From: Octopus sinensis
Taxonomy: Eukaryota
NCBI RefSeq assembly: GCF_006345805.1
Contig: NW_021823849.1
Location: 1 to 20,985, forward strand
Direction of reading: 5' to 3'
DNA length: 20,985 nucleotides
Part shown: positions 16,050-18,914 of the stretch, piece after piece
How positions within the stretch are numbered: position 1 is the stretch's first letter
How the letters are laid out: every line of letters begins with the position of its first letter
Made by a program: the position numbers and the translations under genes
Notes under the pieces: generated by a model
What the model saw: the letters and a program-made list of their open reading frames with translations, nothing else
The model's database searches: none
Told to the model about the DNA's origin: nothing

Positions 16050-16436
16050 AGGCGTGACTGTGTGGTAAGTAGCTTGCTTACCTACCACATGGAGCTGGGG
16101 GTCGGTCCCATTGCATGGCACTTTGGGTACGTGTTTTCTACTACAGCCCCAAGCCAACCAAAGCCTTGTGAGTGGAAACTGGAAGAAGCCCTTCGTATAT
16201 ATATTCTTTCCTTTTCTTTTATTCTTTCACTTGTTTCAGTCATGTGACCGCTTGAACGCCACCTTGAAAGGTTTTAGTCAAATAAATCAACCCCAGGACA
16301 TTTCTTAAGCCTAGTACTTATTCTATCGTTTTCTTTTGCTAATTCGCTAAGTTACGGGGATATAAACTCACCAACACAGGTTGTCAAGTGGCGATGAGTG
16401 GACTAACATGGACACAAAGATACGAAAGACACACAT

Positions 16437-16735
16437 CTCTATCTATCTATCTATCTATCTATCTATCTATCTATCTATCTATCTATCTATCTATCTATCT
16501 ATCTATCTCTATCTATCTGTCAGTCTGTCTTTCTGTCTGCCTGCCTGCATGCATGTCTGCCTGTCTGTCTGTCTGTCTGTCTGTCTGTCTGTCTGTCTAT
16601 CTATCTATCTATCTATCTATCTATCTATCTATTTATCTATCTATCTATCTATCTATCTATCTATCTATCTATCTGTCTATCTGTCTATCTGTCTGTCTGT
16701 CTGTCTGTCTGTCTGTCTGCCTATCTGTCAATCTA
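16437..16735. repeat. (TCTA)n/(TCTG)n array, left of the second LINE
   Basis: Read directly. Confidence 0.95.
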
Positions 16736-18031
16736 AGGATGCGTCCCGATGGTCAGGCGATCCACTTGCTGTCAACACCCGTTAAAAGGAGGACTGGGCA
16801 TGCCGTAGTTGATGCGCAGGCACGCGCTGAGACTGCGACATCTCAGGCTCTACGTAGACGACGGTGAACAGGTGTGGTCGCCGTTTGTGAGGCACGCTTT
16901 CCCGTAGCTCGTCTCCATGACCGAACTGCAGTCGTGGATCAAAAAGAGTGACTCCAACACAACCCAAGCATTCTATAGGGGATTAGTGGATGGGATGTAC
17001 GACGACGAGCTCGGGGCGAATCTGGACGTCGACGAGGAATACCTGACCCGCCTGTTCAGGACGACTTTCAGGCCAGGGCCCATGGACAACTTCCAGAGAT
17101 CCCTGGCCTGGTAGTGCTACCGAGAAGCGCTACCCGTTCGGGATAAGCTCTACAGACACGGCTTGAGAAACACGGGGCCGACTTGCCCGAGATGCGGTCA
17201 GAGCGACGAAACCGTCCTGCACGTACTCGTGCAGTGTCCAACAATTTCCGACCTGTGGGCTTATGTCGAACAATTGCTGTCACGTGTGGGACGAGTCGGT
17301 TTATCAGCTGAGTCTATAGTCAATATTGTCACGCCTCCTTCCTTCAAACGGGAAGGAAGAGCTATTTTCATCATCCTTGTGGCTATGGCGAAAGAATGTA
17401 TCTGGTGGACGCGTCTGAAAGGATTGGAGACAAACACTTTCCTCTCTGGTCAATCTCTCATCAACTTCTTCAAGTACCACTTGAAAAGGAAAGTGAGAGT
17501 AGAGAGGCAAGTTTTGTCTAGCGAACGTTTGAAAAAAAGATGGGTGAATGTAGCAAGGATGGCACGTATGAATGACGAAGCCACCTTGAGCATAATCCTA
17601 TGAACCCAGAAATTGAAAACAGAGGGTTACCCACTTGCAAACAAATGTGGTAACATATAACAATGTTGACCAAGGTTACCGTGGTCTTTTTCGTAGGCTT
17701 CTCTTCCCACGGATAAACCTTCCTTGCTTTCCCCTTTACACCATACATCATGACACTGTGATACACGATCCCTATTGATCGTTTTTTTCCTCTTCCCCTT
17801 TTTTCCTCTTTTTTCTTCTTTTTTCATTTTTCTTTTCTTTTGTTCCTTTTCCCTTTTTTCTTTTTTTTTCTTTTCCTTTTTTTTCTTTTTCTTTTTTTTT
17901 GTTCTTTTTTCCCTTTTACGATCCCTTTTGATCGAAAACCTACGCCACCTTTTTTTTCTCCCCCAAAAGAAAAGCTCTACCTTGTAACTTGTCCCATCTG
18001 TGTGCAGCCCTGTGTGGCTAATAAAGAAACT
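16736..18031 (+). mobile_element. 5'-truncated, inactive Tx1-clade LINE of a diverged subfamily
   Basis: Collinear with about 13016-14225. It has nonsense codons TAG at 16806, 16905 and 17112, where the first copy has TGG, CAG and CAG, and an internal deletion near 16950. The finger CPRC-x8-H-x4-C is retained, the stop is at 17601-17603, and AATAAA is at 18020-18025. Confidence 0.92.
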
Positions 18032-18436
18032 TATCTATCTATCTATCTATCTATCTATCTATCTATCTATCTATCTATCTATCTATCTATCTGTCTGTCT
18101 GTCTGTCTGTCTGTCTGTCTGTCTGTCTGTCTGTCTGTCAATCTATCTATCTATCTGTCTGTCTGTCTGTCTGTCTGTCTATCTATCTATCTATCTATCT
18201 ATCTATCTATCTATCTATCTATCTATCTACTATCTACCTACCTACCTACCTACCTATCTATCTATCTATCTATCTATCTATCTACCTACCTACCTACCTA
18301 CCTACCTACCTACCTATCTATCTATCTATCTATCTATCTATCTATCTATCATCTACCTACCTACCTACCTACCTACCTATCTATCTATCTATCTATCTAT
18401 CTATCTATCTATCTATCTATCTATCTATCTATCTAT
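18032..18436. repeat. (TCTA)n/(TCTG)n/(CCTA)n array, right of the second LINE
   Basis: Read directly. Confidence 0.95.
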
Positions 18437-18914
18437 ACACACGACGGGCTTCTTCCAGTTTCCGTCTACCAAATCCACTAACAAGGCTTTTGGCCGGCCC
18501 GAGGCTATAGCAGAGGATACTTGCCCAAGCTGCCTTGCAGTGGGACTGAACCTGGAACCTTGCGGTTGAGAAGCAAGCTTCTTACCACACAGCCACGCCT
18601 ATGTGTGTGTGTGTGTGTGTGTGTGTGTGTGTCCCTCACAACCACTTGAGAACCAGCGTTAGCGTATTTGTGTCCTCGAAAGCTAGCGGTTCGGCCAAAG
18701 GGACCGATAGAATAAGAACAAGGCTTAAAAATGTAAGTTCTGGGGTCGATTCGCTCAAGTAAAACCCTTCATGGCTGCAGTGAACTGACAGAAGCTAGTG
18801 AAAGAATAAAAGAAAAGGCAGAGAAGACATTGTAAGCTTAATAAAACGGAATGGAAGGTATTATGTTGAAAGGCAGAAAGGACGGGAACAGAAGAGTAAG
18901 AAATAATTATAATA

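Follow-up and report, generated by a model that had tools for sequence, protein, structure and literature searches.

A 20,985-nucleotide (nt) stretch of Octopus sinensis DNA (contig NW_021823849.1; the whole stretch is referred to below as the window) contains a three-level stack of retroelements, in which a truncated long interspersed nuclear element (LINE) lies within a short interspersed nuclear element (SINE) on the minus strand, and the latter lies within a plus-strand SINE of the same family. Direct reading of positions 15400-19200, combined with blastn and nhmmer searches and MAFFT alignment, identified all of the pieces in the order and orientation that a first-pass annotation of the sequence had proposed, with the junctions shifted by a few bases. 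The stack is likely to have been produced by successive retrotranspositions, with the LINE homing to arrays that repeat the motif of its tail.

The outer element, or plus SINE, begins with a head at 16048-16204 (nhmmer E 5e-46; aligning colinearly to the other heads apart from a deletion of 13 nt) that ends in (TA)4 (...GAAGAAGCCCTTCGTATATATAT). It resumes at 18603-18632 with (TG)15, the remainder of its central microsatellite (Tandem Repeats Finder (TRF) 18602-18632; alignment of the joined halves), followed by the 3′ domain, which extends from 18633 to 18820 and possibly to 18841 (nhmmer E 2e-60; alignment clear to 18820). The minus SINE, at 16205-18602, is complete, comprising a 3′ domain (16205-16439; nhmmer E 1e-61) and a full-length head (18429-18602; nhmmer E 1e-54; inverted repeat I4) whose 5′ end reads ATAGGCGTGG. 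Inside the minus SINE are a compound (TCTA)n/(TGTC)n array of 296 nt (16440-16735; TRF 16438-16735, run-length structure), a 5′-truncated LINE in plus orientation, here LINE B (16736-18031; tblastn, translation, nucleotide identity to relatives), and a (TATC)n-based array of 397 nt on the plus strand (18032-18428; TRF 18032-18436). The latter array is made up of the tail motif of LINE B's own lineage together with the target array. Directly adjoining the plus SINE head, with no gap, is a 5′-truncated but unsplit copy of the same SINE (15682-16047, plus strand; blastn, nhmmer, alignment, TRF), which consists of a head remnant (the last ~78 nt, 15682-15759), a (TA)24(TG)n centre (15760-15845) and a 3′ domain of ~200 nt (15846-16047).

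Several lines of evidence indicate that the separated halves belong together. The break in the plus SINE falls precisely where its (TA)n meets its (TG)n, and that in the minus SINE falls within its (TCTA)n array; reading of the junctions thereby bears out the first-pass claim that both SINEs are opened within the central microsatellite. Excising 16205-18602 joins ...CGTATATATAT (TATATATAT) to GTGTGTG, and the result is a (TA)n(TG)n centre without any seam, just as in the unsplit copy. The joined head and tail of each split SINE are colinear with this copy, and in both split SINEs the tail resumes at the consensus position where the head stops. We estimate that unrelated fragments of a ~450-nt element would show such a coincidence of breakpoints in roughly 1% of cases per pair. 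Both full heads, plus and minus, start with an identical ATAGGCGTG, and each inner element is complete at the ends expected of it. As the breakpoints of each pair fall together at one consensus position, and as the inner elements are complete, the nesting of a LINE in a SINE in a SINE stands as originally described.

The region is extremely repeat-rich and the inner insertions lack unambiguous target-site duplications (TSDs), features that would also be compatible with unrelated SINE fragments juxtaposed through rearrangement or through an inversion involving two opposed SINEs, or with an error of assembly. The common consensus breakpoint in both pairs and the completeness of the inner SINE at both ends, along with the natural appearance of the array variant structure, make such an origin most improbable. 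Inversion between opposed SINEs is rejected by the order of the pieces as well, since it predicts head+ tail+ ... tail− head−, whereas the observed order is head+ (tail− ... head−) tail+.

Sequence divergence points in the same direction. Kimura two-parameter (K2P) distances between the plus and minus SINEs are 0.27 in the head and 0.41 in the tail; the corresponding values are 0.23 and 0.44 between the plus SINE and the unsplit copy, and 0.19 and 0.35 between the minus SINE and the unsplit copy. In every pair tails diverge about 1.5-1.9 times faster than heads, and the copy with the greatest divergence, in head and tail alike, is the plus SINE. The first-pass annotation had suggested comparing the divergence of each head-tail pair, on the grounds that heads and tails of different subfamilies or ages would betray unrelated fragments. 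No such mismatch is indicated: the copies fall in the same order whether ranked by head or by tail distance, and the plus and minus tails have in common subtype markers that are absent from the unsplit copy (CGATAGAATAAG, CTAAAACC and a terminal GTGAAAGAATAAAAGAAAAGG). The greater divergence of the plus SINE would fit its being the outermost and hence oldest element, with age inseparable from subfamily among three or four copies. The exact 21-nt inverted match between 16210-16230, inside the minus SINE 3′ domain, and 18798-18818 was recovered as reported, and exists because the terminal GTGAAAGAATAAAAGAAAAGG is a conserved 3′ end of the subfamily. The two opposed SINEs do constitute a long-range inverted repeat, as had been noted, but one that is only 72-87% complementary, with arms of at most 97 nt.

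The LINE B remnant comprises the last 315 codons of open reading frame (ORF) 2 (16737-17603), in a single frame with three in-frame stops. It corresponds to residues 834-1148 of P0104, an intact 1148-residue ORF2 of the same lineage (B) found on an ENA metagenome scaffold, with 72% amino acid identity (tblastn), and retains the CPRC...H...C zf-RVT motif, reading CPRCGQSDETVLHVLVQC. The 3′ untranslated region (UTR) that follows (17604-18031) ends in GTGGCTAATAAAGAAACT. At the nucleotide level LINE B is 80-82% identical to another B-lineage copy, L008, and 73-79% identical to a second LINE in the window, LINE A (8414-14225, plus strand; ORFs, tblastn, junctions). LINE A is near full-length, with a 5′ UTR, ORF1, a frameshifted ORF2 matching P0104 residues 2-1135 across the frameshifts (tblastn), and the end sequence GTGGCCAATAAAAAAGAATTG. 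In a protein search, the only named relative of the window LINE proteins came from the octopod Argonauta hians, whose loci also contain SINE heads of the window's kind (nhmmer).

P0104 and P0136, an intact ORF2 of the A lineage, both have an Exo_endo_phos domain (PF03372), an RVT_1 domain (PF00078) and a zf-RVT domain (PF13966). The closest solved structure to the LINE ORF2 is human L1 ORF2p, colinear through endonuclease and reverse transcriptase (RT) over residues 5-883 (E 1e-53). The match to R2 proteins is confined to the RT core. ORF1 of an intact A-lineage copy (L016) ends in a CCHC knuckle (...RCYICGGLDHLKFFCPQ), a part of the protein that is degenerate in window LINE A. A CCHC zinc knuckle in ORF1 is of the type present in Tx1 and plant L1 elements. 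Octopus vulgaris has been annotated with L1-Tx1 families, Tx1 being active (PMC13282606). Judged from these sequence features, namely an apurinic/apyrimidinic-type endonuclease (APE), RT, zf-RVT and the ORF1 CCHC, the architecture is that of the L1 group and plausibly fits the Tx1 clade. The first-pass designation of LINE B as a "Tx1 fragment" can thus be retained as far as the L1 group is concerned, on the domains of its relatives, with the Tx1 label itself being plausible only.

The 3′ UTR of LINE B has two further peculiarities: an inverted repeat at 17673-17718 (GGTTACCGTGG ... CCACGGATAAACC) that is more perfect in L008 and in a further relative, L013, and a T-rich low-complexity segment of ~120 nt (17798-17917) with no counterpart in L008. 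More distant relatives of ~41-55% identity on long ENA contigs were set aside as belonging to another organism; one of them, L003, is without the SINE and another, L011, is without a microsatellite tail.

All LINE copies have the same conserved 3′ end, GCCCT.GTGGCYAATAAA (GTGGCYAATAAAGAAA), and each lineage adds a repeat of its own to it. In the B lineage the 3′ end is followed by (TATC)n in both copies that reach it, LINE B and L008; the latter ends in ...AATAAAGAAATC(TATC)n, with the array running to the end of the contig. In the A lineage the repeat is (ATT)n in eight cases out of eight (window LINE A, two in the Argonauta locus L001, four in the Argonauta locus L015 and one in L016). The same motifs recur on the 5′ side, (ATT)n lying directly upstream of four of the five A-lineage 5′ ends and (TATC)n at the single B-lineage 5′ end. 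The trend is plain, in a sample of junctions that is tiny and non-random; L002, L009, L010, L012, L013 and L014 stop short of a LINE 3′ end. In other work, flanking of more than 20% of copies by the target has been the criterion for microsatellite specificity (PMC4494074). Window LINE A is flanked by 175 nt of (ATT)n upstream (8239-8413; TRF, junction sequence) and 207 nt downstream (14226-14432, plus strand; TRF), with a similar order of variant units in the two arrays. Elsewhere in the window such arrays are scarce: AGAT-type arrays outside the nest amount to only 88 nt (TRF), and AAT-type arrays away from the LINE A flanks fall under the TRF score-50 cut. Because of this rarity, chance does not account for the position of the two LINEs, each within an array that repeats its tail motif.

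The Argonauta hians locus L015 provides a more extreme example of the same arrangement. Between positions 1729 and 19660, three full-length LINEs are aligned head to tail, their spacers consisting solely of (ATT)11, (ATT)12 and (ATT)5; the series closes with (ATT)4, after which unique DNA begins. Two of the LINE units are 99.7% identical and the third differs in its 5′ 1.7 kb. The different 5′ part rules out simple duplication as the origin of the tandem and points to separate insertions, each into the preceding tail. In L001, the segment 4780-5362 contains a LINE 3′ fragment with (ATT)17, then three tandem tRNA-derived SINEs of ~157 nt, then a full LINE. The 3′ end of this ~157-nt SINE, GGCCCTTGTGGCTAATAGAGAAATCTATT, copies the LINE 3′ motif, and elsewhere the SINE is found at non-microsatellite sites. 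From its sequence, this SINE probably serves as a non-autonomous partner to the LINE.

The arrays around LINE B were compared for traces of a TSD. The variant TGTCAATCTA is found only twice in the window, at 16726 and 18136. The upstream copy is flush with the LINE B 5′ junction, the downstream copy ends 114 nt past the LINE B 3′ end, and both are preceded by (TATC)n and then (TGTC)n. The candidate duplication would thus consist, upstream, of the last ~126 nt of 16440-16735 ((TATC)n(TGTC)n..TGTCAATCTA) and, downstream, of the first 114 nt of 18032-18428 ((TATC)14(TGTC)12 AATCTA). This pattern agrees with an array-made TSD some 110-130 nt in length, which we take as a lead and not as a result; block-order shuffling of the entire LINE B arrays gave a p value of 0.43, the match being confined to the junction-proximal segments. 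Around LINE A, both arrays open with (ATT)5-6 GTT, are interrupted by an ACT and, further on, by two ATC units, and close with (ATT)23-24, hinting that the whole array of ~175-205 nt may have been duplicated upon insertion.

Could the LINE simply carry a (TATC)n tail in the way that others carry poly(A), and insert at random, the upstream (TCTA)n reflecting unrelated evolution of the SINE microsatellite? The tails are indeed lineage features, microsatellites of period ≤6 make up 18.6% of the window (TRF), and the partner-type SINE of Argonauta is not in microsatellites. On the other hand, the upstream array agrees with the tail in motif and strand for both window LINEs and these motifs are rare elsewhere, the unique variant TGTCAATCTA occupies the positions expected of a TSD, and the Argonauta tandems are joined via (ATT)n. 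In view of these data, random insertion appears distinctly unlikely.

Homing of the LINE to arrays of its tail motif has, for its part, a number of observations to contend with. For the B lineage it draws on no more than a pair of 3′ ends and a single upstream flank. The similarity of the LINE A arrays is weak (block-order shuffle p~0.07), and TSDs are unprovable for the two inner insertions, both of which lie within microsatellites. The Argonauta SINE bearing the LINE 3′ motif ends in ...CTATT without a repeat tail and occurs at ordinary AT-rich sites, and the LINE endonuclease itself may not be repeat-specific. Finally, the 41%-identical L011 (ENA ERZ21867824; ~2000 and ~8040) is bracketed by AAATCATTCATC, a candidate TSD of ~12 nt, with no microsatellite, indicating that the repeat tail is not general to the wider LINE group. 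One of these observations, the untailed Argonauta SINE at ordinary AT-rich sites, also suggests that annealing of the tail probably outweighs endonuclease specificity in the choice of target.

What is read directly is the anatomy of the nest, the tail specific to each lineage and the flanking of the LINEs by arrays of the matching motif; from these we infer the following history. The first insertion, on the plus strand, would have been that of a tRNA/CORE-like SINE whose centre was inherently (TA)n(TG)n, possibly as a dimer with the truncated copy. This SINE would next have received, precisely where its TA and TG repeats meet, a SINE of the same family in reverse orientation. The centre of this second SINE would subsequently have changed from (TA)n to a long (TATC)n/(TGTC)n array through substitution and slippage, and a 5′-truncated LINE of the L1/Tx1 group would have integrated into that array. 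Integration could have occurred by target-primed reverse transcription, in which the (TATC)n array, once nicked, would have paired with the (UAUC)n tail of the RNA and primed cDNA synthesis; the TSD produced in the process probably comprised a long segment of the array. LINE B probably landed at this site because the SINE centre had become a (TATC)n array matching the LINE tail.

The suggestion of a dimer comes from the outer boundaries of the SINE cluster. Local alignment matched 15655-15680, to the left of the unsplit copy, with 18842-18869, to the right of the plus SINE (21/27 positions, shuffle p~0.01), making these segments candidate left and right TSDs of a composite of the two SINEs. 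Tests for TSDs of the plus SINE alone (p 1.0) and of the unsplit copy alone (p 0.22) were negative. This tentatively points to a single insertion of the truncated copy together with the plus SINE, in the form of a dimer made for example by template switching between SINE RNAs. By the same tentative reading, the plus SINE would end near 18841 rather than 18820.

The first-pass annotation had gone further, proposing that the variable microsatellite of the SINE acts as a mobile landing pad. This idea agrees with the LINE step, where lineage-specific tails match the arrays, and finds no counterpart in the SINE-into-SINE step, where no targeting signal was detected. The junction of the two SINEs displays no microhomology and no readable TSD in the (TA)n/(TG)n sequence; there is no indication that this insertion was other than an untargeted hit in an AT-rich spot. 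SINE-in-SINE nestings are bound to arise by chance in an octopus genome of which SINEs constitute ~11.6% (PMC13282606); with the centre accounting for roughly a fifth of the element, random insertion would be expected to place a few percent of SINEs in such a centre.

In its broadest form, the proposal makes the central microsatellite a preferred site for retroelements generally, SINEs and LINEs alike, with SINE copies spreading the targets. Both interruptions in the window are central, two of the four SINE centres carrying an insertion and no head or tail doing so; homing of the LINE to arrays would, moreover, turn any SINE-borne array into a potential target. The fourth SINE copy also suggests that the centre is unstable. 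Its head (566-712, minus strand) is 5′-truncated and bordered by compound microsatellites on both sides (region 290-935), and it is associated with 280 nt of compound microsatellite without a recognisable 3′ domain. However, the positional bias comes down to two events, with p~0.19 given that the centre is about as long as head and tail together, so that the enrichment in the centre that had been predicted is not shown by the insertions in the window. The absence of microhomology or TSD at the SINE-into-SINE junction and the abundance of chance nestings speak against a general preference, and the other (TA)n(TG)n arrays of the window have no SINE flanks: an nhmmer search for decayed SINE centres among them found no further heads or tails. 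We therefore consider a preference of this general kind rather unlikely. The landing pad is a reasonable description for LINEs whose tail matches a drifted SINE centre, and is unproven as a general property of the SINE.

The SINE family is represented in the window by four copies (nhmmer, alignment), whose tails finish in A/G-rich 8-mer repeats (TRF, alignment). The heads show motifs resembling the A and B boxes of pol III promoters (TGGCTGTGTGG, GGTTCAGTCCC), although ARAGORN and Rfam call no tRNA there; neither program made any tRNA or RNA-family call in the window. A CORE-like motif in the body (CCTTGGGCAAGT...), recognised by eye, gives the SINE a CORE-like appearance. In Argonauta L001 (480-700, 1993-2098, 3433-3700 and 12354-12423) the same head and body are joined to a different 3′ module, reading …GGACTGA.A…CCTCC…AAACCAATCAGAAATCGG…, which is without a microsatellite and shows no trace of the window SINE tail. 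Going by these alignments, the head is a module common to several octopod SINE families. A metagenome scan with the SINE head-end motif returned only four chance matches of ~22 nt. The SINE motif had no match in viral contigs or GTDB genomes, and the LINE B tail motif none in viral contigs. Upstream of the SINE cluster, the remnant of a mariner-type transposase reading frame (14837-15640, ending ...LGWDVLPHPP) stops ~40 nt short of the cluster; its remainder was not found downstream.

Nested transposable elements generally have the younger element inside the older, and the outer halves can be rejoined; all that sets the present case apart is the position of its two breaks within one and the same short segment. 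LINEs of the Tx1 clade that are specific for microsatellites include Kibi in (TC)n and Koshi in (TTC)n of teleosts, and crocodilian Tx1 elements in (TTCC)n/(TTTC)n, as summarised in PMC4494074, which cites Kojima & Fujiwara 2004. The octopod LINEs resemble these in their L1-group architecture, in having one motif on both flanks and in a specificity that differs between related lineages. Unlike them, they use (TATC)n and (ATT)n, the motif is that of their own 3′ tail, and the candidate TSDs are array segments of ~110-200 nt. The TRAS and SART elements of Bombyx are telomere-repeat-specific LINEs of the R1 clade that build head-to-tail arrays. Such arrays are also formed by other repeat-homing LINEs, such as Dong/R4 in (TAA)n and Togen in (TG)n (PMC4640811). 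All of these integrate into simple repeats, and LINE-repeat-LINE tandems of the L015 type are typical of target-specific elements; however, the octopod LINEs are L1-like and have an APE endonuclease, in contrast to the restriction-like endonuclease of Dong/R4 and Togen and to the R1-clade membership of TRAS/SART.

For the SINE, the nearest precedents are in molluscs. tRNA-derived SINEs of octopus were described by Ohshima & Okada 1994, and one of these, OR2, is a CORE-SINE according to the statement in PMC4758252; the same source reports that Haliotis MESC SINEs contain an internal (CA)n. The window SINE is likewise a modular mollusc SINE with a CORE-like body and an internal microsatellite that expands in single copies, the likeness to OR2 being by description only; the Argonauta element differs in joining the same head to another 3′ module with no microsatellite. 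Squamate transposable elements are known to "seed" microsatellites through their tails (PMC3157835, PMC6050309). There too, microsatellites are dispersed by transposable elements, but the seed is the LINE 3′ tail, whereas in the octopus the array is within the SINE and serves as target for another element.

By itself, then, the nest is a textbook case of nested insertion, and both nested retroelements and microsatellite-homing LINEs of the L1/Tx1 group are known kinds; what is new is the use of (TATC)n and (ATT)n motifs in octopods. The pairing of tail and target in two sister lineages of one LINE family is the observation most worth keeping. Taken further, it could be part of a three-way dependency between SINE, microsatellite and LINE, a joint scheme that we offer as doubtful speculation: related lineages with (ATT)n or (TATC)n tails would home by annealing and generate TSDs of ~110-200 nt, SINE centres, mutating rapidly into a variety of motifs, would keep creating homing sites as the SINEs amplify, and tail switches would open new niches to the LINEs. 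For annotation, the practical consequence is that arrays beside these LINEs should be regarded as part tail and part target, and that SINE halves lying kilobases apart should be joined. If confirmed genome-wide, the two lineages would provide a natural pair for asking whether the RNA tail or the endonuclease dictates target choice in APE-type LINEs, and their relationship with the SINE would help explain why octopods are rich in both SINEs and microsatellites.

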